Sequence record: MW825358.1
DNA: 64,000 nucleotides
Reading direction: 5' to 3' (one strand)
The notes beneath the pieces were generated by a model that saw nothing but the letters and a program-made list of their open reading frames with translations, had not been told where the DNA came from and made no database searches. Positions 13,770 to 52,148 of the stretch are shown piece after piece. The position numbers and the translations under genes are program-made. How positions within the stretch are numbered: position 1 is the stretch's first letter; each line of letters opens with the position of its first letter.

Positions 13770-13772
13770 TCG

Positions 13773-15173: not shown

Positions 15174-15184
15174 GTTGTAAAGAC

Positions 15185-16498: not shown

Positions 16499-16509
16499 CT
16501 GACCACACC

Positions 16510-16558
16510 CCGGCGGATAGACCGCCGGTTCTCAACCCGACTTGAAGGAACTTCAGTC
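16510..16558 (+). promoter_or_regulatory. Twin-hairpin translational leader (second copy)
   Basis: CCGGCGG-ATAGA-CCGCCGG then TGAAG-GAA-CTTCA upstream of ATG. Confidence 0.55.
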
Positions 16559-17959
16559 ATGCTGTACAACAATCTGATTCTCAACACCGATAGTTACAAA
16601 GCCAGTCACTGGACCCAGTATCCGGCCAACACCGAAACGACGTTCTTCTACGCCGAATCGCGTGGTGGGGTACATGACCAGACCGTGTTCTTCGGCCTGC
16701 AGACGATCTTGATGGATTATCTGAGCCGACCGATCACCCATGCTGATGTGGATGAAGCCCGTGACCTGTTTGCAGGTCATGGTGAACCGTTCAATGAAGC
16801 AGGCTGGCGGTACATCGTTGATACCCATGGTGGCTTTCTGCCTGTGCGCATCCGCGCTGTGGCTGAAGGGACGGTCGTGCCGACGCATAACGCGCTCTAC
16901 ACGGTCGAGTCCACCGATCCGGCTTGCTACTGGGTCCCTTCGTACCTGGAAACCTTGCTCATGCGCACCTGGTACACCACCACGGTGGCTACTGTGAGCT
17001 GGGCGTGCAAACAAGTGATCTCCAAGCACCTGTACAAGACCTGCGATGCCCCCGAAGAACAGCTGCCGTTTAAGCTGCACGACTTCGGCGCCCGTGGTGT
17101 GTCCAGCACAGAGTCCTCGGCCTTAGGTGGTCTGGCTCATCTGGTCAACTTCCAAGGCACTGACACCGTGCTGGCCTTGGTGGCTGCCCGTCGCTATTAC
17201 CACTGTGAGATGGCAGGCTATTCGGTTCCGGCCGCAGAGCACGCCACGATCACCCCGTGGGGTCGCGCCGGTGAGGTTGAGGCCTACCGGAACATGCTGA
17301 AGCAATTTGGCCGTGAAGGTGGGATCGTCTCGGTGGTGTCAGACAGCTATGATATCTTCAACGCCGTCTCTAAGATCTGGGGCAATGCCCTGCGTCAAGA
17401 GGTGATCGACTCAGGGGCCACCTTGGTCATTCGTCCGGATTCGGGCGAGCCGGTGGAGATCGTGCTGGAATGTCTGGAGCGGATCGATGCGGCTTTTGGC
17501 CACACCATCAACGCCAAGGGCTTTAAGGTCTTGAACCAAGTCCGTGTCCTGCAAGGTGATGGGATTGATCCGGCCATGCTGGAAAAGATCCTGGAGGCTT
17601 CCACGGCACAAGGCTACTCAGCTGAGAACCTGGTGTTTGGGATGGGCGGCGGGTTGCTGCAAAAGGTCAACCGTGATACGCAAAAGTTCGCACTCAAGTG
17701 TTCGGCGGCGTTGGTGAACGGACAGTGGATCGATGTCTACAAGGACCCGATCACCGACAGTGGGAAGCGCTCCAAGCGCGGACGCCTGTCGCTGTTCCGT
17801 CATCGCGAATACGGCACTTATCGGACCTTGCGTTTGGACGAGCCGACCCCGGCTGGCTTTGACGATGTCATGGTCACGGTGTGGGAGAACGGTAAGCAAT
17901 TGGTGCATCAGACGTTGGCCGATATCCGGCTGCGTGCCGATGCGCTGCGTAGGAAGTAA
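16559..17959 (+). CDS. nadV: Nicotinamide phosphoribosyltransferase (NAMPT)
   Basis: TDSYKASH, LHDFGARG, PAAEH, SVVSDSYD, IRPDSG, QGDG, FGMGGGLLQ. Confidence 0.95.
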   Translation: MLYNNLILNTDSYKASHWTQYPANTETTFFYAESRGGVHDQTVFFGLQTILMDYLSRPITHADVDEARDLFAGHGEPFNEAGWRYIVDTHGGFLPVRIRAVAEGTVVPTHNALYTVESTDPACYWVPSYLETLLMRTWYTTTVATVSWACKQVISKHLYKTCDAPEEQLPFKLHDFGARGVSSTESSALGGLAHLVNFQGTDTVLALVAARRYYHCEMAGYSVPAAEHATITPWGRAGEVEAYRNMLKQFGREGGIVSVVSDSYDIFNAVSKIWGNALRQEVIDSGATLVIRPDSGEPVEIVLECLERIDAAFGHTINAKGFKVLNQVRVLQGDGIDPAMLEKILEASTAQGYSAENLVFGMGGGLLQKVNRDTQKFALKCSAALVNGQWIDVYKDPITDSGKRSKRGRLSLFRHREYGTYRTLRLDEPTPAGFDDVMVTVWENGKQLVHQTLADIRLRADALRRK

Positions 17960-18224
17960 TACCACTTGTGAACCATCCGAATGATCAGCCCCTGATCTGA
18001 TCGGTAGATGTGTTTCGCAACACCCGGAAAACTGTAGGTGGATCACCGGGCCGTGGCAGTAAGAGACCGGCATCAATCCCGGCTCCCAGATATAACGAGT
18101 GGTTGGTTGTTAGACAGGATTCATGGGTAACTGGTTGCCGCCCCCTGCCGATGCCAACGGAACCTTCATCATTTTGTTTATCTTCCATCCGGCCGCAGTT
18201 AGGGCCTCCAAAGAAGTGATCCAC

Positions 18225-18704
18225 ATGAGCATCTTAGCAGGATTGAAGCGTTACGAACTTGCACCCGCCGAATGGCCCAAGGTCCGCCCCAGAATTCCAG
18301 CTGTACAATTGGAAGAAGGTAGTGAGGTACTGTATCTCCCGGGCGCTGCCGTATTTGTCCTAGCTGCATTCGATTCTGCTTTCAGCACAGGGAAAATTGT
18401 CGAGCAATTGAGACTTTACTGGCCTATCCCCGTGGATGTGAAGGTCAAAGAAGATGAACTACTGCGGTTCTTTGAGAACCAAGTGGAGCTGTTCAATGCG
18501 CAATTGACTCATTTGCCAGAACTGAGGGTCTGTGGTTTCGACCAGACTCGTCGTCAGTCAGACCCAGACGGCGGCTACCGCTATGTCACCAGGCGTTACT
18601 CGTGCCCACTCACGCCCTTTGAAAAGGTGTTCCGAAATGACCATGAGGGCCTCGGCGGTCCTTACGGCATGTTCATGAAACCAGTAAAACCAAATTCAAA
18701 CTGA
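18225..18704 (+). CDS. Hypothetical protein
   Basis: 159-codon ORF. Confidence 0.65.
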   Translation: MSILAGLKRYELAPAEWPKVRPRIPAVQLEEGSEVLYLPGAAVFVLAAFDSAFSTGKIVEQLRLYWPIPVDVKVKEDELLRFFENQVELFNAQLTHLPELRVCGFDQTRRQSDPDGGYRYVTRRYSCPLTPFEKVFRNDHEGLGGPYGMFMKPVKPNSN

Positions 18705-18705
18705 T

Positions 18706-18965
18706 GGTACGTCGGTAATATCCGCCGCTTGCGGCAGTGAGCATGCCGACGTATTGCAGTCCCCACACCGCCCGTTACGATGGTTCCGCAATTTACCACT
18801 CAGCGGGAGTAGTCGGTTTACAACGCTTATTGCACTTAGAGGTCAAGGTAGGGTCAGGAGGAGTCCTGATGTCCCCCAAGACTTGGGTCAATACGCTGGA
18901 CCTAACGTGAGCGGTTGGTGGGTGTTTATTAAGGCAAGGACGTATCATGTACGTCCTTTCTTTCC
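18706..18965 (+). ncRNA. Candidate structured RNA ending in an intrinsic terminator
   Basis: TACGTCGG/CCGACGTA, CCCACACCGC/GCGGTTGGTGGG, AAGGACGTA/TACGTCCTT + pyrimidine tail. Confidence 0.45.
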
Positions 18966-18978
18966 TTGTGAGAATCTA

Positions 18979-19278
18979 ATGGCACTTCCCCGTCGCTTTA
19001 AGCCACAGCGACTTGACCGGCTAGAAGAGGTTGTTCTGCCCGGCTGTAGTTACGCTGAACAGATCGTGCAGGCAACCGTGGCGTTGTTTAACGATGACCC
19101 GAGCGCTACCAAGCAACTGGTGGCCATTGACCTGATGGCCCTGACCAAGCTGGGCACTGACCGGACTGAGGAGAACAAACTCCACAGTCTGTTCAAAGAC
19201 GCCGGCTACAGTTTCCAGATTGTCCGCTTCGGTGGTAAGACCGGACAAGACATCGGCGTGCTGGTGACCAAGGATTAA
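18979..19278 (+). CDS. Hypothetical protein
   Basis: 99-codon ORF. Confidence 0.65.
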   Translation: MALPRRFKPQRLDRLEEVVLPGCSYAEQIVQATVALFNDDPSATKQLVAIDLMALTKLGTDRTEENKLHSLFKDAGYSFQIVRFGGKTGQDIGVLVTKD

Positions 19279-19283
19279 GTCCC

Positions 19284-19520
19284 ATGGACAGCGGCGATAA
19301 GGCACGCTTGCTCAGCGCGCTGGATAAGGTCACCGATGTCACCTTGCCGGTGACGGATAAACTCAAAATTCAACTGGACCCACCGATTGTGGATCCAACG
19401 CTCAAACCTGCAGCACTGGCAGCGACTTTCAAGCTCAATGCCCAGCTGTCCAAAACCCTAAGTGCCGGACTCTCACGTAACGGTGAGAACTGGCAACTAA
19501 AGGTCACAAAGAAGTTCTAA
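19284..19520 (+). CDS. Hypothetical protein
   Basis: 78 aa, AAGGA upstream. Confidence 0.6.
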   Translation: MDSGDKARLLSALDKVTDVTLPVTDKLKIQLDPPIVDPTLKPAALAATFKLNAQLSKTLSAGLSRNGENWQLKVTKKF

Positions 19521-19850
19521 GTGTTCCCCGCAAGGGGATCTGCACCGGAGTTAGTTCCTCCGAGGTCAATCGCAGGGCGAGCCCTTTTCGACTTTACACG
19601 CCACTCGTACAGTCCCAGATGGGGCGGAGTTGCGTGACTTGGTGCCTACGCATTGAGGTGTTGACTTGATCTGGCTTGGGTACCGACTAAAAGAACGCTA
19701 ACACTTCGGGCTTATTGTCCGGGTGGGAAGAGACAAGCAGGCGTGCACACCTGCCGAGGTTCTTACCTCTGATCTTCTTGGATTGGTCTCCTTAGCCTGT
19801 AGCATGCATGCGTTTCGACCAAACGCGAGCGTGCTATGGGGTAAGTGATC
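19521..19850 (+). ncRNA. Candidate structured RNA
   Basis: About 330 nt, no ORF on either strand in the track, dense hairpins including a GCAA tetraloop. Confidence 0.45.
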
Positions 19851-19853
19851 TAT

Positions 19854-19880
19854 AGGGATGTCGTCAAGTGGTCTAAGGAT
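19854..19880 (+). pseudogene. 5' fragment of an interrupted tRNA-Gln gene
   Basis: AGGGATG-TC-GTC-AAGTGGTCTAAG-GAT; acceptor strand complementary to CATCCCT at 20421-20427. Confidence 0.85.
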
Positions 19881-19885
19881 GCTAG

Positions 19886-20308
19886 ATGGGTGATATAAGT
19901 CCTCAGTTAAGCCAATACCGTCGAAGAATAGAGACTTTCAAAGAAGTCCTTGGCGGAAAGTGTTGTCGATGTGGCGGAACTGTCAATCTAGAGTTCGACC
20001 ATCGCGACCCCAATGAGAAGTATTTTACACTCACCATGGGTGTGGCCCGAAGTTATCCAGCTGAAGTACTTTTGAGTGAACTAGAAAAATGTCAGTTGCT
20101 ATGTGAGGACTGCCATCTTCAAAAAACTTTAGATGAGAGCGGCAGAGCCGAGCATGGTAGCGCTGGGATGTATCGACATCACGGTTGTCGATGTAACGTT
20201 TGTTGTGAGGCCAATAGAGAGTACTTGAGAAACTACTACGCTCAAAAAACGGCCGATAACCCAAACTACCGGCGTGAACAACGACAACGTCTGAGATTAA
20301 AACAATAG
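19886..20308 (+). CDS. HNH endonuclease
   Basis: CCRCG...LEFDHRDP...CQLLCEDCH; C-terminal HGCRCNVC. Confidence 0.9.
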   Translation: MGDISPQLSQYRRRIETFKEVLGGKCCRCGGTVNLEFDHRDPNEKYFTLTMGVARSYPAEVLLSELEKCQLLCEDCHLQKTLDESGRAEHGSAGMYRHHGCRCNVCCEANREYLRNYYAQKTADNPNYRREQRQRLRLKQ

Positions 20309-20315
20309 TTTTTAC

Positions 20316-20387
20316 AGGGGATTGGCCAAGCGGTAAGGCATCGCCCTTTGACGGCGACATGCGTTGGTTCGAATCCAACATCCCCTA
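20316..20387 (+). tRNA. tRNA-Gln(TTG), CCA not encoded
   Basis: AGGGGAT/ATCCCCT acceptor, GCC-AAGCGGTAA-GGC D-arm, TCGCC-CTTTGAC-GGCGA, GTTGG-TTCGAAT-CCAAC. Confidence 0.9.
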
Positions 20388-30220: not shown

Positions 30221-32710
30221 ATGCACTTGAACAAACCCAGTGATGAGCTGGTACTTGAGCTGATCAATCAAGCGAACGATCGTTCCTTTACGTTTGATCA
30301 AATCGACATTGCCAGTCCCACACCCGTAGATCATAACGGCAGAAACACCCAAGCCACCGTGACTGCCCTAGGTGGTGGTTACACCGGAACTCAGTTGATC
30401 TTCTATAATCGACTGGATCTTGCATTAGCGCTGCCAAACAACAGTCAAGATGGACTGGAGCTGGTCATCCCCAACGACGGATTTGTCGATAGTACCGAGG
30501 TGTGTGATCGACTGAACTTGATGTTCCAATATCAGTTAAGTCCGGAAGATGTCGTGGTAGAGGCCGTGGACGTGAGTGTCCTGCCGGCGACCTACACCCT
30601 CAAAGCTGCAACACCGTCATTGGCCTGGATTGGACAGAAGACGCTGACCATCGACACCGGCCGTCCTTTGTGGGTTGACACCTTTAGCTCCTTAGAGTTA
30701 GCTGGCTTCTTGCCAGCCGATGTTTCCTCACTGACCGAACCGGTCACGCTGTATAACCAAAACTCGGTCTTGGCCACCGCGCAAAACCGCTTGCCCTTTG
30801 ATGCCGGATATCCTTCTCCGAATGTGTCAATGACCAGCAATAGCGAACTGCAGATGGAGTTGAGTGCTCGCCGCGGTGACGGTTCGGTCTCAGTGGTCCC
30901 TGACGCCAACAGCACCTACACACTCAATGTCGGAAACGAATCGACCTGGTCTTTGCTGGTTTCAGGAAAGTTGCCGGCCGGACAAGTGGTGGGCGATCGG
31001 TATGTGATGAGTTTGAATATCACCTGCCCGGACAATGCCCAGGCGGTGTTCCAAATCGAACGGGTCAACGGCGTCTATACCCTGATCAATGATGATCTTG
31101 CAGTGCGCGTGCCGTTCAGCTATAACGCCGCAGATGGCAGTGCATTTCAGATGCTACTTGAGATCACCTATCTGCTCGATGCCATGGGTGAGCTGTCGCT
31201 GGCCAACACCAATGCCAACAACGCTCCCATCGGTACTTACTTGATTGAACTGCAGGCCCGCCGTAAGAACAGCGTAACCCCACGCCTGCTGGCCACGATG
31301 ACGGTCAATGCCATCAATACGGCCGCAGCAGCCGATACGTCGCTGATCACAGAGTACCAAAACGCGCAGGAACTGACCTTTAGCTGGGCCAACCTGACAG
31401 GCTGGACCAACACCCATCTGACGGTCAGTAACAACCGGGTGTTAGGAAATGCCTCCGGCAGTGGCACCTCGTGCTATGCGGCTTATCCTTTCACTGTACA
31501 AGCCAATGAATCGGCAGTACTACACGGTGAGGTGATGGCAGGTACCGGACAGACTTCAGCGCTGTATTTCGGATTCTCCTTTGGCGAAGACCCGATCAAC
31601 ACAATCTCCACCAAGACAGGTCTGGCAGGTGTGGGTGGTGCGAACAATACCCCGTATGCTTACATTGGTACAGAGTTTACAGAAGGTGCAGGTGTTAATG
31701 CGCTGGACGGTGCCGCTCAGGCTGCAGGTGCCTACCGCATCACGGTGGCAGTGGACCCTGAAAACATTTCCTTTGTAGTGCGCAGTGCAGACGGTACCAA
31801 GGAATGGTCCAAGTCGATTCCCCGCTCGGCTGCTCCTAATGGCGGTGTGGTCACCAGCATCCGCATCTGGAATGGCTCTACTTCTGCCAGCACGGCTCGC
31901 TACTTGAGTGTCTTGGGTGTGCGCAAGTCCTTCACGCCCTTTAGGACCAAGACCAACGCGGCTGGTACTATCGAAGGTTCCACCGAGCGAGTGATTCATC
32001 GGACCGTGACCGATGGCTGGCGCATTCAGTTCCCCAAGACGATGAATGGTAACCAAGCCACCCCGGTGGTGATGTTCTTCCATCAGGCCCAAACTGGTGA
32101 TCGTACCGATGTGATGACCGAAGCGCGTTGGACAGCATTGCGTCAGTCTTTGAGCAATAAGGGATATATCCTGCTCACAGCCGATGACCAAGGGGATCGT
32201 TGGGGTAATCGTGCCTCCATTCGTAACCATGCTAACTTACTGCGCTGGCTACGTCAGCGGGTGAACATCGGTAAAGTCTTTGTCATGGGCTATTCGATGG
32301 GCGGTCTGACCGCGTTGAATGCGATTGCCAATCGTGCCTTAGGCCCGGTGGCCGCAGCAGCCTTGCTCTCACCGGTATGCGATTTGGTGGCCATGCGCGA
32401 TCCGACCTTTACGGCCACGATCGATGCGATGTGGGGCAGTAACAGTGCTGCATCCTTAACGCAGTTGTCAAAGGGGTTCAACCCTGTTTTGACCTCACCT
32501 GTTAAGTTTGCTCGCATTCCTTACATCTTCAATGTCTCCACCGGCACCACCGATACGATCACACCTACCGCAGTTCATGCGGCAGTGTTTGAAGCCTTGG
32601 TGCGACCCTATGCTAAGTCCACTGCCTTTAATGTGGCAGGGACAGGGCATGGTCCAAGTGAAGCGTGGAATGCCACCTGGATCACTGGGTTGTTTGACGC
32701 TAACCTGTAA
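30221..32710 (+). CDS. Putative tail fibre with C-terminal alpha/beta-hydrolase domain
   Basis: Shared N-module (ELVLELINQAN...YNRLDL); GYSMGG nucleophile elbow; C-terminal TDT...GH. Confidence 0.75.
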   Translation: MHLNKPSDELVLELINQANDRSFTFDQIDIASPTPVDHNGRNTQATVTALGGGYTGTQLIFYNRLDLALALPNNSQDGLELVIPNDGFVDSTEVCDRLNLMFQYQLSPEDVVVEAVDVSVLPATYTLKAATPSLAWIGQKTLTIDTGRPLWVDTFSSLELAGFLPADVSSLTEPVTLYNQNSVLATAQNRLPFDAGYPSPNVSMTSNSELQMELSARRGDGSVSVVPDANSTYTLNVGNESTWSLLVSGKLPAGQVVGDRYVMSLNITCPDNAQAVFQIERVNGVYTLINDDLAVRVPFSYNAADGSAFQMLLEITYLLDAMGELSLANTNANNAPIGTYLIELQARRKNSVTPRLLATMTVNAINTAAAADTSLITEYQNAQELTFSWANLTGWTNTHLTVSNNRVLGNASGSGTSCYAAYPFTVQANESAVLHGEVMAGTGQTSALYFGFSFGEDPINTISTKTGLAGVGGANNTPYAYIGTEFTEGAGVNALDGAAQAAGAYRITVAVDPENISFVVRSADGTKEWSKSIPRSAAPNGGVVTSIRIWNGSTSASTARYLSVLGVRKSFTPFRTKTNAAGTIEGSTERVIHRTVTDGWRIQFPKTMNGNQATPVVMFFHQAQTGDRTDVMTEARWTALRQSLSNKGYILLTADDQGDRWGNRASIRNHANLLRWLRQRVNIGKVFVMGYSMGGLTALNAIANRALGPVAAAALLSPVCDLVAMRDPTFTATIDAMWGSNSAASLTQLSKGFNPVLTSPVKFARIPYIFNVSTGTTDTITPTAVHAAVFEALVRPYAKSTAFNVAGTGHGPSEAWNATWITGLFDANL

Positions 32711-32713
32711 CCG

Positions 32714-32751
32714 GCATAACCCCCTCCCCGTTTGGGGAGGGGGCTTTATGC
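32714..32751. terminator. Bidirectional GCATA..hairpin..TATGC element between convergent genes
   Basis: CCCCCTCCCC-GTTT-GGGGAGGGGG. Confidence 0.75.
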
Positions 32752-32754
32752 TGC

Positions 32755-35700
32755 TTAGTTCTTCAGATACGCTTCGCGGTTGAAATACGAGTAGTACTCG
32801 GTGAACAAGCCCTTCTTGTACTTACCGTAAACGCCCTGACCATCGCCGTTGGGCACCAGTACCGGCATGCAGACCTTGTTGTCATTGACAGAGGAGATCT
32901 GATCCAGCGTCCGGGTCTTAGTCCACACACCGGTGCCATTGGTATTGGGTGCATCCCACTGTTCCAGCGTGGAGAGCGAGCCGTCATAGGCATTGGAGTT
33001 GGACACGATCATCCGAGGATTGGTCGTTCCCACCAACACCTTACGCGCACGCCCCATCACCCGGATCGAACCGGCCGGCGGGTAGATATTGCAGACCTTG
33101 GTGGTGGTCCAGCTGGCGGCCAGATGAGGCTGGGTCGTGTTGGTCAGGTACGAGTAGTACAACTCACCAAAGTTACCGGTGCTGTTGTAGATACCAAACC
33201 AATGCGAGGTCTTATCCGCACCCCAGAAGGCAATACGGTCTTGTCCCTGAGTCTGGTAAGTCGCCGGAGACTGGATCTGCGCCCACTGCGACTCATAGTC
33301 GGTGTAGGTGTCAGGATTGTTACTGAAGTTATTCAGCTCCACTCCATTGGAAGTCAGCACGCCCGTTTCCACATTCAGATCAGCCACCCGAATTGCATTG
33401 GTGCTTGAGTCTGAATTCTTAAAGCAGTAGAAACGCACGGTCTTCCCATCGTCCAACACGACCGGACTGAGGTAGAACTGATCCGGGCAACCCACCAAAC
33501 GCCATGACACATATCCACCAGCGGCGAACTGTCCATCATCGGCCGCAGAGGACACCAACAGTTCCCACAACCACGGCAACCCGCCACCGTTGATATTGCG
33601 TGTCAGGATACAGGTCTTACCACCAGCAGTGAACGCATTAGCGTAGGCCGTAGTACCACGTGCATTGACAGAACCAATGACCAACGAGTTCGGATCGGTG
33701 CTGGTACCACGGGCAATCTTGACACTGGCCGAAGTACTATGGCCGGCGTAGGTTGCAAACAACTTACCCGACGGAGTCAGACACATCGCCACCGGGGCGT
33801 GGTCATCCATACCGCCAGCGACACCCAGGCTGACATATTGCTCAACCTCGCCAGTGGCCTTGTTCAGCTGTGCCACGTTATTGCGACCAGTGTGCGAGAC
33901 ACTACCCGAAACGACCTTATTGCCAATGACCAACATCATTGGTTCGTTCTGGTAGGTCCAGCTGGCATCGGGGATGTCCATCTGGAGTTCGCTACCAAAG
34001 AACGCGGCATGCTGCCCTGTAATCTTAGCCTGCAGACCATTGTCCAAATTGGCGCGAGTCAACAAGAACTCATGAACCACTGCGCCATGGGTCACATTCA
34101 AAGTTGCACTGGAAGGAACTGTTTCACTTGAGACACCGCCAGCGGTATAGTAGGTATCACGCGCGTGCTGTGGCGTGGTTGCACCATCCTGCCAAATCCG
34201 CAGATAACCATTGGTATAATCAAGCAAACCAATGATTTTCATCGAGGGCTTGAACAACAACTGTCCATTACTGGTTGAGTTGGTGTTGGATTCTGGGTTT
34301 GGTGGACTACCGTCCAGCTTACGGCCTTGCAAACCCCAACCAAGAGGCGTCTTGGTGCGGAACAGATAACGTGCCTGGGATGTGGAGGAGCCCGCAGCGA
34401 CCTTAACTGTAAAGACTTCGCCAGACTGTTGCTTAGGCGCGTTAGAGATGATCAATGCCGCCGCAATGCCCGAAACACCGCTGAGTTTACCCAATGCAGA
34501 AGTAGTGGCGCTTTGGTTGATACCACGCGACAGACCACCCCAACGACCTTGGCTCTTGACCACTCGCATGTTCGGACTACCGCCCACGACCTCACCGTTG
34601 TTGAACTGGTCATAGACCTTGGTGACATCACCAATGCCGCCGTTCAAGAACGACTCAATTTCCGTATCAGGCGTGTAGACCTGCAACACTGCCGCATCGG
34701 CCAGTCGGGTGATTTCAAACAGCGGACCGGTGTAGGTACCCGTCAGTCGATGGAACGCCCAACCGGTAGCCATCGAAGACTCAACACCGTTGTAGGGATA
34801 CACCACCGGCGGAACGTCATTGTCCGTGATCGTAGCCGTGGCCGAAATCGTGCCGCCGAGCTTATAGCCGGTACCTGCCAACAGCGTAGCGATGACCGTC
34901 TCGCTAGATTCCACTTCGGTATCATCGATCGTGGCAATCGTCAGATTGACAGTTGTACCACCCACGCCGATGTTCAAGGAGTTGGGGGCGTTGTAATCAC
35001 TACCACGGGTAGCCGTACCGGAGTACTGTGCACCGATGGTCAGTGCCGCCTTGGTCGCCTTGTTCAGACTGACCGTCAAGACCAAGCTGGAGCCTTCCAC
35101 ACCGGATGGGCTACCGCTGATGGTGACTTCAGGCAGAATGTAATCGGTGAACGTACCGGTGGCTGAAGCCGTACCGACAGTATAGCCAGAGCCACTGCCG
35201 ATCGTAGCAATCAGGCTATGGTTACCGTCCTCCACCAGATCCAACTTACCCGGCACCGTCAGGGCCACACTGGTTTGACCAGCAGCAATGGTAACGCTGG
35301 CCGGGGCATTGGCGTAGTGGGTGTTGTTGACAGCCGTGCCGCTATAGGTGGCCGGAACCACCACGTTGTACGGCACCGGACGGTTCAAGCTAACCGTGAA
35401 GGTCAGGCTCCCACCTTCTTCCACAGAAGGCGTCCCACTGATGCTCGCCACCGGCGGTGCATCGCCCAGGATTGTTCCTGTGGCAGAGGCATTCACGCCC
35501 AAGGTGTAATCGCCCGCGCCGGTGACGATGGTAATCTCAATCGTCTCATCGCCTTCAAAGACATCATCGGTCAAAGTCTGGATCACCAACGAGGCGCTCG
35601 AGGCACCTGCAGCGATCAACACACTCGAAGGAGCGGTGTAGTCAAGATTGCGCGTAGCGCTACCGGAATAGGACAGCTCCACCTGCGTATCGATCACAGC

Positions 35701-36555
35701 GGCCTTGTTCAACATGATCGTAAAGGCCAGGCTCTCACCTTCCACCGCAGTGGGGGCGCCTGTGATATTGACCACCGGCGGGACATGATCAATGATCACG
35801 CCTTCCAACACCGGCGCGCCACCGACCACGTAATCGCCGGCGGCAATGGCCACCGTCACGGTCTTGTTGCTACCTGAGGCTTGAACAAAGTGCGTGGCCA
35901 CCCGGAAGTCTACCGTGGTCTGACCGGCCAGCAGCGTCACGCTATCAGGTGCGGTATAGTCCGTCCCACGTACAGCTGTACCGCCATAAGTCAGCCCCAT
36001 GACCAGATCTGAATCACTGACCTTGTTGGAGGTGATGGTAAAGGCCATCTCCTGACCTTCTTCGGTATTGCTGCCACCGGCCAGCGCGACCACCAACGGC
36101 GGTTCGGGCAGTTCAGCTTCCGGGTCCAGAATAACCACTTCAGCCGAGCCGATATAGGCTAAACTGGTGGCCTTAGTCGCCAGGGTAATGGTCACCGGAT
36201 AATTGGCAGGATCCACTTCAATGGAGGAGACCTCGATGTCATCCTCAGAGATTCCAAAGCCGTAACGGGTATTGATCAGCTCGACCAGGTCCAGCGTGGA
36301 ACCAATGGTTTCAGGATCGTTAAAGCTCAGACCCACGCTCTGAAAGATACGCGTGAGGTCCAAGCGGGTGTAATGGGCCAGTTCCTTTTTCCCATCCGGG
36401 TATTGGATACTGACTGTGGTGTTATAGGCGGTACCTGCAATGGGTGCAGGGGTTCCGAAGATCAAATCGGTTTCAGTGTAATCGGTTTGCTTAAGGTCAT
36501 TGACCAATTGCACTAAAAGCGATTTGCTTCCTTGACTGAAGTCGGTATTTGACAC
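32755..36555 (-). CDS. Large putative tail fibre with Calx-beta-like repeats and a BNR/propeller-like C-terminus
   Basis: MSNTDFSQGSKSLL N-module; four repeats of EG..L.FTV.L...Y.GTA..G.DY; DDH/GH motif region. Confidence 0.75.
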   Translation of the reverse strand: MSNTDFSQGSKSLLVQLVNDLKQTDYTETDLIFGTPAPIAGTAYNTTVSIQYPDGKKELAHYTRLDLTRIFQSVGLSFNDPETIGSTLDLVELINTRYGFGISEDDIEVSSIEVDPANYPVTITLATKATSLAYIGSAEVVILDPEAELPEPPLVVALAGGSNTEEGQEMAFTITSNKVSDSDLVMGLTYGGTAVRGTDYTAPDSVTLLAGQTTVDFRVATHFVQASGSNKTVTVAIAAGDYVVGGAPVLEGVIIDHVPPVVNITGAPTAVEGESLAFTIMLNKAAVIDTQVELSYSGSATRNLDYTAPSSVLIAAGASSASLVIQTLTDDVFEGDETIEITIVTGAGDYTLGVNASATGTILGDAPPVASISGTPSVEEGGSLTFTVSLNRPVPYNVVVPATYSGTAVNNTHYANAPASVTIAAGQTSVALTVPGKLDLVEDGNHSLIATIGSGSGYTVGTASATGTFTDYILPEVTISGSPSGVEGSSLVLTVSLNKATKAALTIGAQYSGTATRGSDYNAPNSLNIGVGGTTVNLTIATIDDTEVESSETVIATLLAGTGYKLGGTISATATITDNDVPPVVYPYNGVESSMATGWAFHRLTGTYTGPLFEITRLADAAVLQVYTPDTEIESFLNGGIGDVTKVYDQFNNGEVVGGSPNMRVVKSQGRWGGLSRGINQSATTSALGKLSGVSGIAAALIISNAPKQQSGEVFTVKVAAGSSTSQARYLFRTKTPLGWGLQGRKLDGSPPNPESNTNSTSNGQLLFKPSMKIIGLLDYTNGYLRIWQDGATTPQHARDTYYTAGGVSSETVPSSATLNVTHGAVVHEFLLTRANLDNGLQAKITGQHAAFFGSELQMDIPDASWTYQNEPMMLVIGNKVVSGSVSHTGRNNVAQLNKATGEVEQYVSLGVAGGMDDHAPVAMCLTPSGKLFATYAGHSTSASVKIARGTSTDPNSLVIGSVNARGTTAYANAFTAGGKTCILTRNINGGGLPWLWELLVSSAADDGQFAAGGYVSWRLVGCPDQFYLSPVVLDDGKTVRFYCFKNSDSSTNAIRVADLNVETGVLTSNGVELNNFSNNPDTYTDYESQWAQIQSPATYQTQGQDRIAFWGADKTSHWFGIYNSTGNFGELYYSYLTNTTQPHLAASWTTTKVCNIYPPAGSIRVMGRARKVLVGTTNPRMIVSNSNAYDGSLSTLEQWDAPNTNGTGVWTKTRTLDQISSVNDNKVCMPVLVPNGDGQGVYGKYKKGLFTEYYSYFNREAYLKN

Positions 36556-36645
36556 GGCAGGGGTTTCCTTCTTATTACAGGGAAAGGCATACGATAGGGC
36601 AGCATAAACCCCACTCCTGTGAGGGAGTGGGGGCTATGGTCCTTC

Positions 36646-38745
36646 TTAACCAATTCGTTCCAGAACCAAAATACTCAGATAAGCGTAAATGGTACTGTCG
36701 CTGCCGGAGGAGGTCAGCGCAAATTCCAACTCGCCAGATGAGTTGGGGGTCCAATCGGTTTGTTCAAAGCGCCACTGATTCGTCCCGGCGGTCTTGGCAC
36801 TGGCCGCATCGTAGCTACCGCCCGTACCAGAGCCCTTGGTGACTGCCACGTTGGTGATACGGTTGGTGGCCGACATATTCGTGTCAGCGCGCAACGACGC
36901 CAGCACTACGCGATAAGCACCTCCCGGAGCCAATCCTGAGAATTGCATCCTCACCGGCACGCTACCACGGATATAGGCAAATCCGCTCAAGTCATTTGCG
37001 TAGATGTCCGGCTCGTAGTGACGATCTGTCCCGCCATCCGCACTACCACCAAAGTAAGAACCTCGGGTATCACGGTTGGTCAGGGTCAACACCACACCGG
37101 TGGGTTCACCTGCGGTGGTCAGTGCGTTACTCAACAGGACCGAACCAATCGGGCGGTCTGAACCGCTTGAGTTGGTGGCGACCTTGTTCACACCCGGAGT
37201 GCTGGCCTTGCTAGAAAGACCGAATGACGCACGGATCTTATCGCCTACATCAAAGCTATCGACCGGAGGTGAGGTGTCACCGGCATCGGTGTAGGTACCT
37301 GTGGCACTAAAAGTTGCGCCACGCACGTAACCATCGCCAGTAGTGTTAACGCTCACGATCAGAGTCTTATCGCCATCTGCGGCACCATCGGCCAGACCTT
37401 GAACCGAGAACGTCGTACTGGTTTGATTGGCCGGGATAGTGACCTCAGAGGGTCCTGCGACATAGTCTGTTCCCACCGTCGCAGTACCGCTGTACTGCAA
37501 GGTGACACGGCACGGCCAAGGCACTGCTGCGTCCAAAGTTACCGTGTACTGCAAGGCACCGTTCTCAGCCACAGGTGTGTTGACCACAGCGATCGTAGCG
37601 GCCGGCCTTGGGATATATGGGTTCTTGGCAATCCGTGCAGGCGCCACACCGGTTCGGCCGGGAATGGCAACGGTATCTGCAATGTGCCTCCAGTAACCGG
37701 TCACACCTGCAGGGAGGTTGTGGATGTTATCGGGCTGAAGCCAGATGACATTGTTATTGTAGGTCAAGGGGTAAGACTCAGACCAAGGCTTGTTTGTCCC
37801 TGCGAACAAGTACTTACCACGGGCTGCATTGATGACATCGATGATGTGTTCGTTGTAGGGCAACGAGCCTGCGGCCTCATTGGCGTAGGTCGTATTGTCA
37901 TAGTCACGGAAGGTGGCATCTGACAACATCACATCGTAGCCTTCAGCTTCCAGCTGATCCCAAATGTAATTCAAGTCTGCCTTAACGGAAGCCACATACG
38001 TGGATTCTTGCGCACTGGTGTAGGGACGACGATCGGTTACATCGTTACCGATGATCGAGCCAATCCAAACCTTGGTGCTCTTGTTAGAGGGGAACCCTGC
38101 GGCCTTGATCGCTGCAATTTTGGTGGCGATATTAGCGCGCAAGTTAGACGTGCGTGCACCGCCATCTGCCAATTCCAACAAACCAGGTCGGAACCCGGTG
38201 GCCGCCTCAACGCGATCCAAGAAGGCAGTCTTATTGGCAGCCGGAGATAACGCATAATCTTCCAGACTTGCGCCGAGGATTACCAGGTTCTCCAAAGGAA
38301 CAAAGTCTGATAATGCCGTCAGCGTCAATGCCGACTGTCCGATATAAGCCAGGCTGCTTGAAAGTGCAGTCATGGTGACTTGCGCTGGATGCTGTATGTT
38401 GCCAAAATCGAGCTGACTCAAACTCACATCTTCAACACCCAGGCTAAAACCAAAGCGTTGGTTGATCAGATCTAACACATCCTGAGTCTCTACGAGATTT
38501 TCAGGATCAACAAAAGACATGTCTAGCGTTTCAAACAAGCGTTCCAAGTCTAGTCGAGTGTAGTACGCCTGCTCTGCATAATGATCGGGGTACTGGACAC
38601 GCACAACTGTGTTGTACGAATCACCCACTACAGGCGCAGGTTGACCAAAGAGCAAGTCTTGTTCGGTATAGGTGGTTTGTTTGAGATTGTTGATGAGCTG
38701 GACTAGAAGTGATTTACTTCCCTGACTGAAGTCAACATCTGACAT
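36646..38745 (-). CDS. Putative tail fibre with SGNH/GDSL-like esterase and one Calx-beta-like repeat
   Basis: MSDVDFSQGSKSLL N-module; ILGASL, GND, DNIHN. Confidence 0.75.
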   Translation of the reverse strand: MSDVDFSQGSKSLLVQLINNLKQTTYTEQDLLFGQPAPVVGDSYNTVVRVQYPDHYAEQAYYTRLDLERLFETLDMSFVDPENLVETQDVLDLINQRFGFSLGVEDVSLSQLDFGNIQHPAQVTMTALSSSLAYIGQSALTLTALSDFVPLENLVILGASLEDYALSPAANKTAFLDRVEAATGFRPGLLELADGGARTSNLRANIATKIAAIKAAGFPSNKSTKVWIGSIIGNDVTDRRPYTSAQESTYVASVKADLNYIWDQLEAEGYDVMLSDATFRDYDNTTYANEAAGSLPYNEHIIDVINAARGKYLFAGTNKPWSESYPLTYNNNVIWLQPDNIHNLPAGVTGYWRHIADTVAIPGRTGVAPARIAKNPYIPRPAATIAVVNTPVAENGALQYTVTLDAAVPWPCRVTLQYSGTATVGTDYVAGPSEVTIPANQTSTTFSVQGLADGAADGDKTLIVSVNTTGDGYVRGATFSATGTYTDAGDTSPPVDSFDVGDKIRASFGLSSKASTPGVNKVATNSSGSDRPIGSVLLSNALTTAGEPTGVVLTLTNRDTRGSYFGGSADGGTDRHYEPDIYANDLSGFAYIRGSVPVRMQFSGLAPGGAYRVVLASLRADTNMSATNRITNVAVTKGSGTGGSYDAASAKTAGTNQWRFEQTDWTPNSSGELEFALTSSGSDSTIYAYLSILVLERIG

Positions 38746-38816
38746 AGTGGATTTTCCTGGGGAAAGGTGTGTGATAAGACCCGGGCTTTCAACAAAGCCC
38801 GGGTCTGTGCTGCTAA

Positions 38817-40586
38817 TTAAGACAATCTTTCCAATGCCACAAATGCCAGATAAGCAAAGCCAGCCCCACCTGTGGGAGCAACCTTAATCTGGATTATGTT
38901 GTCCACCGGCTGAATGGTCTGATCATAGTACCAGTTGTTGGTTCCTTCCGTCTTGGCACTGGCCGCGTCAAACATGCCGCTTGGACCCACACCCTTAGTG
39001 ATGGACACATCCGCACGGCGATTGGTCGCGGTCATACTCGTGTCGCTGCGCAAACCGCCCAAGACGACCCGATAGTTACCGGCAGGCAGGTTTTCAAAGG
39101 CCACCTCGATATAACCGGCGTTTTGAACATACCAGCTAATGAAAGCATCGTCGCCTTGCACATACGGCAGGAACTCACGCCGCACACCTGTGTAGCTGCC
39201 TGACTGCGGAGCTTTGATCATACGTGCCAAGGCATAGGTGAGTTCGCCATCGGTGTTGAACACGTCTTGCTTGATCAAGGTTCCGCTTGGGATACCGCCC
39301 GGTGTGACCGCATTGGCGTTGGCCAACAAGTTGCTGCCCGGTGAGGGGACCTTGTCCTGGAAACCCAAACTAAACCGCAGCATCTTTCCAACGTTCAAGC
39401 CGTTGGGATTGATAACAGGCACCAGGTCTCTTGCCGTAGGTGCCACGCCGGTGACCCAAGGGGTCAGCAAACGATCCACCAAGCGCTGGCGCCACTCGAC
39501 ACGTCCAGGGTCGGCAATGGGGTGAATGTTGTCCACACCAAACCAACGCTCGTAGTTCAAGCGCGTCCACGTATAGTAGTCCGCCCACGGCGTACCGTCG
39601 CTGTACAAGAACTTCCCACCAGCCCGCTCGGAGATAATCGGCTTGATCACCGCCTCGTTCCACGGCAATGAACCGTTTTGCGGATAGGCCACAGTGGTGT
39701 TGTCATAGTCGCGGAAAGAAGTCGTCACCAACTGCCATTCCCAGCCACGGGCCTGGATCTTATCGATCAAGGTATTGAGCTGTGCCTTAAACGTAGCAAC
39801 CTTACTTGCGTGGGTGGTGGCGTTATAAGGACGGTTGTCAGTAACATCATTGCCCAGCGGGTGCAACAAGACCTTGGTGGAGGCATCATTGAGGACCGAG
39901 GCGGGAAGCGTGGCGATCTTAGCATCAAAATCATTGTAGATATTGATCAGGTTCGCACCTGAGTCAGCCAGCTCGTAAACCTCAATGGTTTGTCCGGTTT
40001 GATCTAAGACCCGCTGCTTCACCGCCGCGATTCCATCGCTTTGGAACATGGCATCTTCAATGCTGGCGCCTAAGATGACCAAGTTCTTCATTGGGGTAAA
40101 GGTGGGGACTTCAGGCTCGGGTTCCGGGTCCGGATCAGGGACAATCACCACGGGCGCGGTAAGGGTCAGGGTGGATTGTCCAATATATGCCAGACTGGTC
40201 GGCAGGGCCACCAGTGGAATCAAGGCGGGGTATTGCAGATTACCCAGATCCGTCTCAGGGGTCTCTACGTCTTCGATCCCCAGGCCGTAACCGAAACGCT
40301 GGTTAATCAAGTCCAACAGGTCCTGTGTCTGCCCGAGTGTCTCAGGGTCTGTAAAGGACATATCGGCAGTTTCAAACAGCCGCTCTAAATCCAGTCGTGT
40401 GTAGTGCGCCTGTTCTTCATTCAGATCAGGGTATTGAATGCGCACGGTGGTATTGAACGAGTCACCTGTTGCCGGAACAGGGGTACCGAAAGTCAGATCC
40501 TGTTCACTGTAGGTGGTCTCCTTAAGGAGGTTGACCAGTTGGGTGAGCAAAGACTTACTTCCTTGAGAATAATCAACCTCTGACAT
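38817..40586 (-). CDS. Putative tail fibre with SGNH/GDSL-like esterase
   Basis: MSEVDYSQGSKSLL N-module; ILGASI, GND, DNIHP. Confidence 0.75.
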   Translation of the reverse strand: MSEVDYSQGSKSLLTQLVNLLKETTYSEQDLTFGTPVPATGDSFNTTVRIQYPDLNEEQAHYTRLDLERLFETADMSFTDPETLGQTQDLLDLINQRFGYGLGIEDVETPETDLGNLQYPALIPLVALPTSLAYIGQSTLTLTAPVVIVPDPDPEPEPEVPTFTPMKNLVILGASIEDAMFQSDGIAAVKQRVLDQTGQTIEVYELADSGANLINIYNDFDAKIATLPASVLNDASTKVLLHPLGNDVTDNRPYNATTHASKVATFKAQLNTLIDKIQARGWEWQLVTTSFRDYDNTTVAYPQNGSLPWNEAVIKPIISERAGGKFLYSDGTPWADYYTWTRLNYERWFGVDNIHPIADPGRVEWRQRLVDRLLTPWVTGVAPTARDLVPVINPNGLNVGKMLRFSLGFQDKVPSPGSNLLANANAVTPGGIPSGTLIKQDVFNTDGELTYALARMIKAPQSGSYTGVRREFLPYVQGDDAFISWYVQNAGYIEVAFENLPAGNYRVVLGGLRSDTSMTATNRRADVSITKGVGPSGMFDAASAKTEGTNNWYYDQTIQPVDNIIQIKVAPTGGAGFAYLAFVALERLS

Positions 40587-45667: not shown

Positions 45668-45753
45668 CCGACATAGCCCCTCCCCGTTTCCGGGGAGGGG
45701 CGTCTATGCTGGTTGTTCTTTTTCAAAGGGTCGATTCAAAAGAAACTCAGACC

Positions 45754-45820: not shown

Positions 45821-46180
45821 ATGATCAAAGTCCTTTCCAAATCTCACTCTGTCAAGATGACACAAAACCACAAGGAAGCGCTGGAGGTCATGACCTATGT
45901 CGATGACAGCGACGCTATCCCACGTACGTTGAACCGTCTGCGTAACAAGGAACTTTACTACGCCGATGGTCGGGCGTACGAGAAGCTCCTTGGGATGCCA
46001 GTCTACCTGCGCAAGGTCAAACCTTTCAATCGCGTGTTTGTCCAAGCTCCTAACGGAACTTGGGTGGACGTAACGGAAGCGACCTACCAGGAACTGCATA
46101 ACGTAGCAGTTGGAGAACTAGGCGTTCCTGTGATCGGCGAAAGTTGGTGGGGACGTGTGGTTCGTGCTTTACATTTCTAA
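45821..46180 (+). CDS. Hypothetical protein
   Basis: 119-aa ORF. Confidence 0.65.
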   Translation: MIKVLSKSHSVKMTQNHKEALEVMTYVDDSDAIPRTLNRLRNKELYYADGRAYEKLLGMPVYLRKVKPFNRVFVQAPNGTWVDVTEATYQELHNVAVGELGVPVIGESWWGRVVRALHF

Positions 46181-46195
46181 ACAAAGGAGCTTTAA

Positions 46196-46600
46196 ATGAA
46201 CCGCATCACTATCGACAAGATCCTTAGCGAGATCGATAAGGGTGGAGACTACAGCGCTGTAGATACGGCTGTACTCGAACAGGAACTGCGTAAGCTCATG
46301 AACTTCATGAAAGTACGGGATCGCTATATCGTCCTTAAGTACTTCGGTCCGGCTGATGATCGTCTTACGTTGAAACGGCTTGGCGCTATCTTTGGCTTGT
46401 CCGTTACCAGCATTGCAACGTTTCGAAATCGAAGCTTACGCCGTATGAGCCATCCTGCTCGAAGTGAGGCGCTTTTCAGCCTGGCTGCTCGGGTGGAGAA
46501 AGTCGATGTACCTGAACTTGAATTTACCCGACCAGAAAAACCTATGTTCCTGCTCACTCGGAGGGCCCTTGCTCGTGCCGAAAGACTCAAACAAAACTGA
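46196..46600 (+). CDS. Stand-alone sigma70 region-4-like protein
   Basis: RDRYIVLKYFG...TLKRLGAIFG...RSLRRMSHPARSEAL parallels RpoD region 4; AAGGAG RBS. Confidence 0.8.
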   Translation: MNRITIDKILSEIDKGGDYSAVDTAVLEQELRKLMNFMKVRDRYIVLKYFGPADDRLTLKRLGAIFGLSVTSIATFRNRSLRRMSHPARSEALFSLAARVEKVDVPELEFTRPEKPMFLLTRRALARAERLKQN

Positions 46601-46734
46601 AGACTTCAAGTTCGAATGTGCCTCCACCGGTCATGCCGGTGCGGACTTTCTCCTCGGACTGTTCGGCTGTGTGGCCGAGGCAGTCATCAACACCGGTCTG
46701 GAACGCAACCGCCAGGCCCAACAGGAAACCTCAA

Positions 46735-47058
46735 ATGACGAGTCCTGATACACCCTACCCGATCGTGACCCCGGCTCTGGCCAAGGATCTGCATCGGTTC
46801 AAGCAAGTGATGTCCAGCGAGCAAGACCGCTGGCTCAAGCACCTGAACACCGCCATCGTTCAGCTGGTGATGTTGAACGGCTTTACCGGACTGGTCCAAC
46901 CGCCCCTGGTCGTGCGCAGGCAACTGTCCACAGAGTTCATCGAAGGGCTGGCTGAGTGCCTGCGCCGAGATGGCGGTTGGACGGTCTCCTGGGTCTTAGA
47001 TGACCGCAGTGCCACCAACTTCGAATACCGCTACATCTTCTCCCTCTCAGCACCATAG
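46735..47058 (+). CDS. Hypothetical protein
   Basis: AGGA RBS. Confidence 0.65.
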   Translation: MTSPDTPYPIVTPALAKDLHRFKQVMSSEQDRWLKHLNTAIVQLVMLNGFTGLVQPPLVVRRQLSTEFIEGLAECLRRDGGWTVSWVLDDRSATNFEYRYIFSLSAP

Positions 47059-47900: not shown

Positions 47901-48578
47901 ATGCCTACCATTGATCTCACCAAATTACTCAAGCTGCTCTTGAACCCCAAGAGTTGGCTGTACATCCTCGGTCTTGTTGTCGTGTTAGTGGTGGCTTACA
48001 AGGGCTACAACTGGGTTTATGACCGCGGCGCTGCGGCTAAGGAAAAAGAACTAATTGCCCTTGTCAACAGCAAAGAAGCTGAGCGCAAGGAGGCGGTGGA
48101 TAACTATAACCGCTATAAGGGCGAGTACGATGCTTGGGTGGGTAATACCAAGAAAGCCCAAGAGCAGTACCTGAAAGAACAACTGGCCGATCTGGCCGAG
48201 CGTCAGCGCCGGCTGGAAGAGGCTGAGAAAGCTGCCCGCAACAAACCTACCACGATCAAAGAGGTGATCAAATATGTTCCGGCCGAAGTGGATGCTACTT
48301 ATCGCCTTCCTGTTGGTCTTGTGCGGTTGTACGGGGAAACTCTGCAAGGACAACCCGCCCCCGGTTCCAGCGCTGAGCTTTCCGGAGGCAACGCCATCAA
48401 TGTTGGCGCCCCGTCCGGTCTTGCGGTGTCCCAATTCGGATACATCGCAGCTTTCAACAACGCCGAATGTGTCGTGCGTGGAGAAGTGATTGCCGAGTGG
48501 CAGGACTGGTATCGAGTTAACAAAGCTAAGTTTGACAAGATTCAAGCTGAGCAAAAGGCCAACGGTCCTACCCCGTAA
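47901..48578 (+). CDS. Inner-membrane spanin (Rz-like)
   Basis: N-terminal TM, long coiled coil, embedded lipoprotein ORF. Confidence 0.7.
   Translation: MPTIDLTKLLKLLLNPKSWLYILGLVVVLVVAYKGYNWVYDRGAAAKEKELIALVNSKEAERKEAVDNYNRYKGEYDAWVGNTKKAQEQYLKEQLADLAERQRRLEEAEKAARNKPTTIKEVIKYVPAEVDATYRLPVGLVRLYGETLQGQPAPGSSAELSGGNAINVGAPSGLAVSQFGYIAAFNNAECVVRGEVIAEWQDWYRVNKAKFDKIQAEQKANGPTP
48274..48489 (+). CDS. Outer-membrane lipoprotein spanin (Rz1-like), embedded in another frame
   Basis: GAGGTG RBS; signal peptide with LVLCG-C lipobox; Pro-rich mature part. Confidence 0.7.
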   Translation: MFRPKWMLLIAFLLVLCGCTGKLCKDNPPPVPALSFPEATPSMLAPRPVLRCPNSDTSQLSTTPNVSCVEK

Positions 48579-51581: not shown

Positions 51582-52148
51582 ATGATCGTTCTCCCCAAGC
51601 CCGCCAGCTTCACCGAAAGCTACTTCGTACACCTTATCTACGCACTCATTGGTTGGATTGAAAGCAACGGCTTTGATCCGTATCTGACGGTCGATACCAC
51701 CGCACCGGGGCTGAAGCTTCCGGAGCACATGTTCAAAGATCCGATCGCTTCTCTCAATATGGCCGGCCGTGCCATCCGGAACCTGACGATCACGGAAACC
51801 GAAATTGCTTTTAACACACGGTTTAGTGGCAAAGACTTTCGTGTGGTGGTACCTATCCCAGCCACCAAGATCTTGTGGGCCAATGGCTCACCTGAGACAG
51901 TGGGTTGGCCTGTTCCCCATCTCAACACGATTTGCCATTGCAAGCCGGTGATGGACGAACAAGGTGAAGTGAGGCTGGTGGAAGAGGACAAGCTTCCGCC
52001 ACCACCGCCGGACACAGTGGTCCCCACCCAGACGCATGCGTTCAGTGCAGATGCTGTGCAGCCTAGCCAGTCCAGCGCACCTGTAGTGCCCACCGCCTCG
52101 GTCAGCAGTATGGCCGACTTCCGTGCCCGCCGTAAGCCCAGCAGCTAA
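51582..52148 (+). CDS. sspB: SspB (ClpXP adaptor) homologue
   Basis: LIYALIGWIESNGFDPYLTVD..PG...SLNMAGRAIRNL....IAFNTRFSG matches the SspB core; disordered tail. Confidence 0.85.
   Translation: MIVLPKPASFTESYFVHLIYALIGWIESNGFDPYLTVDTTAPGLKLPEHMFKDPIASLNMAGRAIRNLTITETEIAFNTRFSGKDFRVVVPIPATKILWANGSPETVGWPVPHLNTICHCKPVMDEQGEVRLVEEDKLPPPPPDTVVPTQTHAFSADAVQPSQSSAPVVPTASVSSMADFRARRKPSS

Follow-up and report, generated by a model that had tools for sequence, protein, structure and literature searches.

Nucleus-forming jumbo phages of the PhiKZ type (group 1) have been described as lacking any sigma factor, and they are thought to pair assorted helix-turn-helix (HTH) transcription factors with RNA polymerases (RNAPs) of their own. 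Transcription of the type phage, PhiKZ, is independent of host RNAP. In its non-virion RNAP (nvRNAP), the C-terminal domain of gp68 lies at the position of sigma region 4 (sigma-4) and touches upstream DNA without sequence conservation. PhiKZ late promoters carry a TATG at the start site and its middle promoters an element near -24, for which no recognizing factor has been identified in the literature. Group 2 jumbo phages, in turn, encode minimal sigma factors with a single HTH, RpoD-like sigma factors, and gp33. The gp33 of phage T4 reportedly occupies the place of sigma-4 on the β flap without reading the promoter, and is said to have a functional C-terminal tail. Here, we describe LUCX_186, a gene in a 64,000-nucleotide stretch (the window) of the genome of Xanthomonas phage vB_XciM_LucasX (LucasX). 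By homology, its product is a divergent region-4 domain of the sigma-70 family that stands alone, encoded in a group of phages that are not known to have sigma homologs.

The window matches record MW825358.1 (305,651 bp) exactly, window positions being record positions minus 124,000. LucasX infects X. citri and is placed among the chimalliviruses, the nucleus-forming PhiKZ-like jumbo phages; it encodes split β/β′-like RNAP subunits and a PhuZ-like tubulin. The β-like subunits are GenBank LUCX_4, 7, 60, 78, 79, 91, and 287. LUCX_186 (QVD49256.1; Table 1) is annotated in GenBank as a hypothetical protein of 134 amino acids (aa) and forms part of the co-directional block LUCX_181-192. Its ATG start codon lies 15 nt beyond the stop codon of LUCX_185 and is preceded by a Shine-Dalgarno sequence.

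Several sequence searches agreed in relating residues ~20-97 of LUCX_186 by homology to the C-terminal region 4 of primary-type sigma factors, a likeness that the preliminary description had noticed from the sequence alone. In a phmmer search against the PDB, the best chain was 3n97_A, region 4 of sigma A (E=4.9e-6); of the 59 chains listed, the first 54 by score were sigma factors and the remaining five (E=0.7-0.94) unrelated proteins. NCBIfam RpoD models matched with a best E-value of 8.6e-6, and PHROG 351, "RNA polymerase sigma factor", with one of 1.6e-6. An exhaustive HMMER search of 1.84 billion representatives returned eight non-self matches (E=4.5e-5 to 1e-3), seven of which contained the Pfam domain Sigma70_r4. 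Two of these seven were sigma factors, one complete and one N-terminally cut, and in the rest the domain occurred either by itself or next to others; the remaining non-self match (P0008) showed only DUF7485, below threshold. LUCX_186 aligned only with the last 75-80 residues of sigma factors, and its identity to any sigma-4 was 25-33%. A further match, to the NCBIfam model of the anti-phage defence sigma MzaA (E=0.0025), was confined to the common sigma-4 part.

The curated Pfam model itself, PF04545 (Sigma70_r4), scored 13.4 bits (E=0.057) and did not reach its gathering threshold of 24.1 bits. No GerE or related HTH family was matched in the Pfam scan at E<=10, which gave only Sigma70_r4 and a chance-level TelA, and no PADLOC model matched at E<=1. 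We therefore classify LUCX_186 as a divergent Sigma70_r4 relative outside the curated Pfam boundary, whose homology rests on the other searches; taken by these statistics, its resemblance to sigma region 4 far exceeds chance. The strong PDB matches were to SigA of Thermus and Thermotoga, of actinobacteria, and of Firmicutes, whereas proteobacterial RpoD chains scored lowest (13-15 bits, E=0.2-0.9). The preliminary description had stated that the protein closely tracks E. coli RpoD. The peptide on which this was based, RSLRRMSHPARSEAL, is indeed present (residues 79-93) and the homology to region 4 holds, but the match to RpoD of E. coli is weak (14.7 bits, E=0.3).

Two AlphaFold2 runs of LUCX_186 as a single chain, with 24 and 125 aligned sequences, gave the same pattern of predicted helices: residues 2-14, 21-36 (H1), 40-50 (H2), 59-66 (H3), 70-84 (H4), and 87-97 (H5), followed by a low-confidence linker and a last helix at 118-133. 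The mean predicted local distance difference test score (pLDDT) was 59.5 and 65.0 in the two runs, with values of ~83 in the HTH and ~80 in the last helix. When the model was compared with the PDB by Foldseek, sigma region 4 accounted for 50 of the top 50 matches, and chains consisting of sigma-4 only were matched with template modeling (TM) scores of 0.72-0.78 and root mean square deviations of 2.6-3.0 Å over 61-67 columns. As the models were built on sigma-4 alignments, this agreement in fold amounts to consistency and not to independent proof; the independent evidence for kinship with sigma-4 is the sequence statistics.

Compared with region 4 of primary sigma factors (SigA; PDB 3n97, 1ku7, 6ono, and 7kuf), LUCX_186 has the same predicted layout from H1 to H5, with the HTH at H3-H4, the same glycine in the loop, and the same signature, L-R...H-P-x-R-S...L, beyond the recognition helix. 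Unlike them, it stands alone, without regions 1.2, 2, and 3; its loop before H3 is one residue shorter, its HTH is much more basic, and it has an extra N-terminal helix and a C-terminal extension of 37 residues. The N-terminal extension (net charge -2) is not entirely foreign to sigma factors, as its later part aligns with the linker before region 4, the alignments beginning at residue 6 to 20. For the C-terminal extension, no PDB sequence match was found at E<=10, nor any relative. Artificial chimeras of sigma-4 and the flap tip rank high among the Foldseek matches, and imitation of the β-flap tip helix by the C-terminal helix was considered on this ground; it was set aside for want of any sequence match to the tail. 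The long Foldseek alignments to these chimeras reflect the N-terminal linker, since full-length sigma factors align over equal lengths.

The domain was further compared with 120 sequences bearing sigma-4, mostly fragments of primary sigma factors, with columns termed near-invariant if at least 90% of the family had one residue in common. LUCX_186 keeps 3 of 13 such columns in H1-H2, with lysine and tyrosine at two of them, 3 of 4 in the loop, and 3 of 6 in H3. In the turn and recognition half of H4 (residues 69-80), a single one of 12 is kept, a buried isoleucine. Residues 81-97 keep 7 of 14, all of them within 81-93 (Fisher p=0.036 against residues 69-80), and the contrast of residues 69-80 with all other columns (1/12 versus 16/37) gives p=0.037. 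By this measure, the replacement of the recognition helix is non-random and more than uniform divergence, and the earlier claim that the residues recognizing the -35 element had been replaced by SVTSIATFR (residues 69-77) is confirmed. Mostly small, uncharged residues are found at the positions that read the -35 element, while positions of the hydrophobic core are unchanged or have undergone conservative substitutions. Loss of the -35 residues does not alone mean that DNA binding has been lost, because the recognition helix also differs in sigma factors for other promoters, such as P0005 (see below), and the family of 120 sequences is dominated by primary sigma factors.

The distribution of charge is equally distinctive. 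The net charge of the HTH (residues 59-84) is +6, compared with a mean of +1.9 and a maximum of +4 in the 120 sigma-4 domains, and the calculated isoelectric point is 11.2 for the sigma-4 domain and 10.25 for the whole protein. Four columns that are near-invariantly acidic in the family are basic or neutral in LUCX_186 (K60, R61, T71, and R77), and V, S, and A replace the near-invariant arginines of columns 70, 72, and 74, which belong to the opening turns of the recognition helix. Judged from these residues, the DNA-facing unit is recharged at its flanks and small and uncharged at its centre, so that charge is redistributed and not erased. Such a pattern fits nucleic-acid binding that is either driven by the backbone or retargeted. 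It also accords no less well with a repurposed DNA-binding regulator than with a decoy, both ideas having been raised in the preliminary description.

Table 1. Features of LUCX_186 and its surroundings, in window positions unless a contig is named.
Feature	Position	Strand	Basis
G-rich hairpin, then CTATG and T-run, between LUCX_184 and LUCX_185	45679..45708	+	sequence reading
Shine-Dalgarno sequence AAAGGAG	46183..46189	+	sequence reading; 6 nt 5' of LUCX_186 ATG
LUCX_186 coding sequence, 134 aa plus stop; stand-alone sigma-70 region-4 protein	46196..46600	+	open reading frame list, GenBank, homology searches
N-terminal extension, residues 1-23, acidic, predicted helix 2-14	46196..46264	+	AlphaFold models
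Sigma-4 domain, residues 24-97	46265..46486	+	phmmer against PDB, Foldseek
Turn and recognition half of helix 4, residues 69-80, including SVTSIATFR	46400..46435	+	1/12 near-invariant columns kept
End of helix 4, HPxRS-type turn, start of helix 5, residues 81-93, within RSLRRMSHPARSEAL	46436..46474	+	conserved columns
C-terminal extension, residues 98-134, linker then predicted basic amphipathic helix 118-133	46487..46597	+	AlphaFold, pLDDT ~80 in last 15 residues
LUCX_187, 107 aa, second orphan in LucasX-specific slot	46735..47058	+	homology searches
P0005 / RNAP gene cluster	L003:5748-13121 (JGI contig Ga0502373_0001020)		phage-like contig

To cover the whole LucasX genome, 3979 six-frame open reading frames (ORFs) of at least 40 codons were scanned by phmmer with three sigma queries: a complete primary sigma factor, a partial one, and P0005. 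No sigma region 2 or 3 was found in LUCX_186 or in any of these ORFs. The sole ORF matched was LUCX_186 itself, by region 4 of the queries only, and no paralog of it was present among the 3979. Without region 2, LUCX_186 cannot therefore be a sigma factor on its own, in agreement with the preliminary description. At the sensitivity of phmmer, a split sigma factor with region 2 on another polypeptide is likewise not supported, although a gp68-like subunit would be undetectable in this way.

No orthologue of LUCX_186 beyond the gene itself was found in a word-indexed search of 5.8 billion proteins, in 50,697 phage records searched by tblastn, or in IMG/VR, and on these searches it is a singleton of LucasX. 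The related phage RTH11 has ordered counterparts of LUCX_183, 184, 185, and 188-198, and its slot corresponding to LUCX_186 and LUCX_187 holds one unrelated gene of 137 aa. In Xoo-sp14, counterparts of LUCX_190 and 191 are present, but no sigma-4-like ORF was found in that neighbourhood. LUCX_187 gave no Pfam, PHROG, or PDB match, was found by tblastn only in LucasX, and has no RTH11 counterpart. A remnant of the RTH11 slot gene was suspected in another frame 3' of LUCX_186 (46602-46748), but BLASTP returned no alignment. LUCX_185 itself (45821-46180) has an RTH11 homolog with 36% identity over 69 aa (E=4e-9; RTH11 region L002:5193-5997). The gene after it in RTH11, that of the slot, is faintly like the LUCX_185 family (E=0.086) and possibly a diverged tandem duplicate. 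The GC content at third codon positions (GC3) of LUCX_186 is 0.50, compared with 0.64 +/- 0.07 in 35 neighbouring genes (z=-2.0), and that of LUCX_185 is also low (0.57). The value for LUCX_186 is mildly suggestive of a foreign origin of lower GC content.

Of the sigma queries compared directly with LUCX_186, the one nearest to it was P0005 (pairwise BLASTP E=9e-13, 33% identity over 89 residues), a complete sigma factor of 286 aa with regions 2-4, encoded on a 27-kb metagenome contig of 33% GC (L003). Its gene lies two genes after a β′-like gene and adjoins a gene for a 1407-aa homolog (E=2.6e-32) of the large RNAP subunit of LucasX. P0005 and LUCX_186 have in common the one-residue deletion in the loop and a non-canonical recognition helix, and P0005 comes from a phage with a LucasX-like large RNAP subunit; unlike LUCX_186, it has regions 2 and 3, and its contig is otherwise unrelated to LucasX. 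In the library-wide search of the 1.84 billion representatives, P0005 was no better a match to LUCX_186 than cellular sigma factors were. Descent of LUCX_186 from a phage sigma factor is thus no more than plausible. The presence of a true sigma factor in a phage multisubunit RNAP cluster is at odds with the published view of RNAP-encoding jumbo phages as devoid of sigma factors. No P0005-like sigma factors were found in characterised jumbo phages, and most matches were to short, unannotated records.

Small proteins with little beyond a sigma-4-type HTH are known from other phages. The minimal single-HTH sigma factors of group 2 jumbo phages are of this kind, as are Sigma70_r4 proteins of uncultured phages in BFVD (A0A6J5S254, 136 aa; A0A6J5LJJ3, 95 aa; A0A8S5LPG9, 82 aa). 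Unlike LUCX_186, these come from phages without an RNAP of their own or from unknown phages. The BFVD proteins were weak structural matches to the LUCX_186 model (E=0.05-0.9), and none was a sequence relative in the exhaustive search.

We tentatively favor the reading, held with rather less than even confidence, that LUCX_186 is a retargeted, sigma-4-derived DNA-binding accessory protein. In this scenario, LUCX_186 would be a lineage-specific accessory consisting of one sigma-70 region-4 domain with short helices at both ends, most likely descended from the C-terminal end of a complete sigma factor, either phage-borne or from a non-host bacterium, which the LucasX lineage alone acquired or retained. 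The fold, including the HTH, would have been kept, while the residues reading the -35 hexamer were rewritten and positive charge moved to the flanks (K60, R61, R77, and R79). The protein would then bind nucleic acid through its retargeted HTH, either showing little specificity or preferring sites other than the host -35 element, and would serve during infection as a small regulatory or DNA-associated factor; contact with an RNAP flap through H1, H2, and H5 may persist. DNA binding, its target, and any regulatory effect are here inferred from the domain's sequence. The reading is favored by the intact HTH fold, the basic DNA-facing unit, and the commonness of single-HTH proteins in phages. That the recognition helix changes with specificity is illustrated by P0005, the nearest pairwise relative and a complete sigma factor, whose recognition helix is divergent as well.

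Several points weigh against this reading. The first two turns of the recognition helix offer only S, V, T, S, I, A, and T, with no long polar side chains to read bases, and the bland centre of the helix could alternatively be a patch for protein contact. The conserved turn and helix 5, which are needless for DNA binding, are retained without explanation. Confidence in the model is moderate (mean pLDDT 65), no candidate operator or repeated target motif was found, and no selection signal can be measured because there is no orthologue.

The conserved turn and helix 5 are better accommodated if LUCX_186 is a surrogate of sigma-4 that docks on the flap of host RNAP, either in the manner of gp33 or as a competitor of sigma-70 region 4. 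Such a protein would sit on the β-flap tip helix without reading the -35 element, and would weaken -35-dependent initiation by the host or, through its C-terminal helix, act as an adaptor. The best-kept segment of LUCX_186 is precisely the end of helix 4, the HPxRS-type turn, and helix 5 (7/14 versus 1/12), and H1, H2, and H5 of sigma-70 face the flap according to a review of T4. The succession of domain, flexible linker, and terminal helix recalls gp33, a small phage protein of similar build, with a tail behind its domain, that binds to the flap in the way sigma does. The interface of sigma-4 and flap is, moreover, a frequent target of phages, as in Xp10 P7, T4 AsiA, and P23-45 gp39, the first of these from a Xanthomonas phage. 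LUCX_186 would use the same interface, but the folds of these three, which bind sigma-4 or the flap, are unrelated to it and do not include a sigma-4 homolog; no sequence similarity to LUCX_186 was found. Homology to gp33 was not found either, there being no gp33 family among the Pfam and PHROG matches and no gp33 chain among the PDB matches at E<=10. The native contact between sigma-4 and flap is comparatively weak and region 4 of sigma-70 is tethered, which would make a free domain a poor competitor; H1-H2 keeps only 3/13 near-invariant columns, and the extra positive charge of the HTH would be superfluous for docking. The T4 system also uses host RNAP together with the region-2-like gp55, whereas LucasX encodes its own polymerases, no gp55-like partner is found in its genome, and PhiKZ is independent of host RNAP. 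On balance, we regard docking on the host flap as the main rival to the favored reading, possible but rather unlikely.

Host transcription is also the supposed target if LUCX_186 is a decoy that titrates binders of host sigma-70 region 4, such as class II activators or anti-sigma factors of the Rsd/AlgQ type, an idea to which we give very little credence. In its favor, LUCX_186 retains the HPxRS-type turn and the basic stretch that follows the recognition helix. However, a decoy should copy the sigma-4 surface of its host, while identity to any sigma-4 is only 25-33%, with proteobacterial RpoD scoring worst, and the adjoining helix surface differs at 11/12 near-invariant columns. The HTH has not decayed to a neutral surface either, its net charge of +6 exceeding the family maximum of +4, and host shut-off of this sort fits poorly with a chimallivirus whose type phage transcribes without host RNAP. 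If the partner were instead a multisubunit RNAP of the phage, LUCX_186 would be a sigma-4-like accessory acting in trans, docking on the equivalent of the β flap and contacting upstream promoter DNA. PhiKZ gp68 and AR9 gp226, from the same phage group, place a sigma-4-like C-terminal domain there, which touches upstream DNA without a conserved -35-like element; the middle promoters of PhiKZ with their element near -24 lack an assigned factor; and P0005 sits in a phage RNAP gene cluster. Yet gp68 (521 residues) and gp226 are larger, two-domain, permanent subunits without detectable sigma sequence homology, while LUCX_186 is single-domain and sigma-70-like, and no gp68 or gp226 chain was among its PDB sequence matches. 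As gp68 already holds the sigma-4 position permanently in nvRNAP, and LUCX_186 is missing from RTH11, Xoo-sp14, and all further sequenced chimalliviruses, so that it is not a core component of transcription, we consider such an accessory role quite improbable; the specific proposal of a free sigma-4 module working with the phage's own multisubunit RNAPs, on the flap-equivalent domain and in contact with the upstream promoter, seems to us very improbable. Finally, LUCX_186 might be a non-functional, drifting remnant of a captured sigma gene, or its present role might be unrelated to transcription. This would agree with its status as a singleton without orthologue among the 1.84 billion representatives, with its place in a variable slot, with a GC3 about 2 standard deviations below its neighbours, and with a score under the Pfam threshold. 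The frame is intact, though, and has a strong ribosome-binding site, the hydrophobic core survives, and conservation is patterned by structural element with no uniform decay, which leaves this explanation unlikely.

The hairpin upstream of LUCX_185 (Table 1), with its CTATG at 45704-45708, is a possible terminator, a possible start of a transcription unit with LUCX_185-186, or both. It fits the pattern GGGG-N(0-4)-TATG, which is enriched in the window, with 29 sites versus 7.3 +/- 3.1 expected (e.g., 3178, 25460, 32739, 36603(-), 42777(-), 45697, 47827, 48611, and 54775); GGGGYTTATG occurs 6 times versus 0.17 expected. In the cases inspected, the G-run forms the 3' arm of a terminator-like hairpin, and the sites may be coupled terminator/promoter signals. 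The pattern was not found consistently upstream of known LucasX late genes, so the temporal class of LUCX_186 could not be assigned from it.

Other parts of the window drew attention as well. LUCX_176-179 (30221-40586) encode four consecutive proteins of 829, 1266, 699, and 589 aa with an N-terminal DUF7941 in common, joined in one of them by a Calx-beta domain and in another by an alpha/beta-hydrolase domain; they appear to form an array of paralogs with swapped C-terminal modules, possibly serving in host recognition. LUCX_190 (47901-48578) matches PHROG families of a signal-peptide protein and of Rz-like spanins; no other gene of the block is so well conserved (69% identity in RTH11), and in Xoo-sp14 it is split into two ORFs. 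LUCX_196 (51582-52148) is SspB-like, a homolog of the ClpXP adaptor (Pfam SspB, E=4.9e-11) with an RTH11 counterpart annotated alike, and might serve to redirect proteolysis in the host. Five tRNA genes (Leu-CAA, Leu-TAA, Thr-TGT, Ser-TGA, and Gln-TTG) lie at 11616-20387, as reported for LucasX.

Gene tags in the LucasX paper (PMC9009655) differ from those used here, which are those of GenBank MW825358.1. The offset in its S1 and S2 Tables grows to roughly 15-20, and the entry "LUCX_186 = VOG02166" in the S1 Table refers to another gene. Similarly, GenBank LUCX_177-179 are the DUF7941 proteins and not NadM/NAMPT, and the numbers of the RNAP genes differ between the two sources.

The significance of LUCX_186 is limited, as the gene is a singleton in one phage. 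Still, a clearly sigma-70-derived sigma-4 domain in a chimallivirus genome shows that sigma fragments do enter this lineage, and LUCX_186 provides a natural case in which this fold has been released from recognizing the -35 element. DNA binding, if real, would show a sigma domain turning into an ordinary regulator, whereas docking on a polymerase flap would make LUCX_186, as a homolog of sigma-4, the counterpart to the non-homologous solution found in T4 gp33. Should it work with a phage RNAP after all, it would be the first sequence-recognisable component of the sigma-70 family in chimallivirus transcription, and a clue to how these phages switch between promoter classes.

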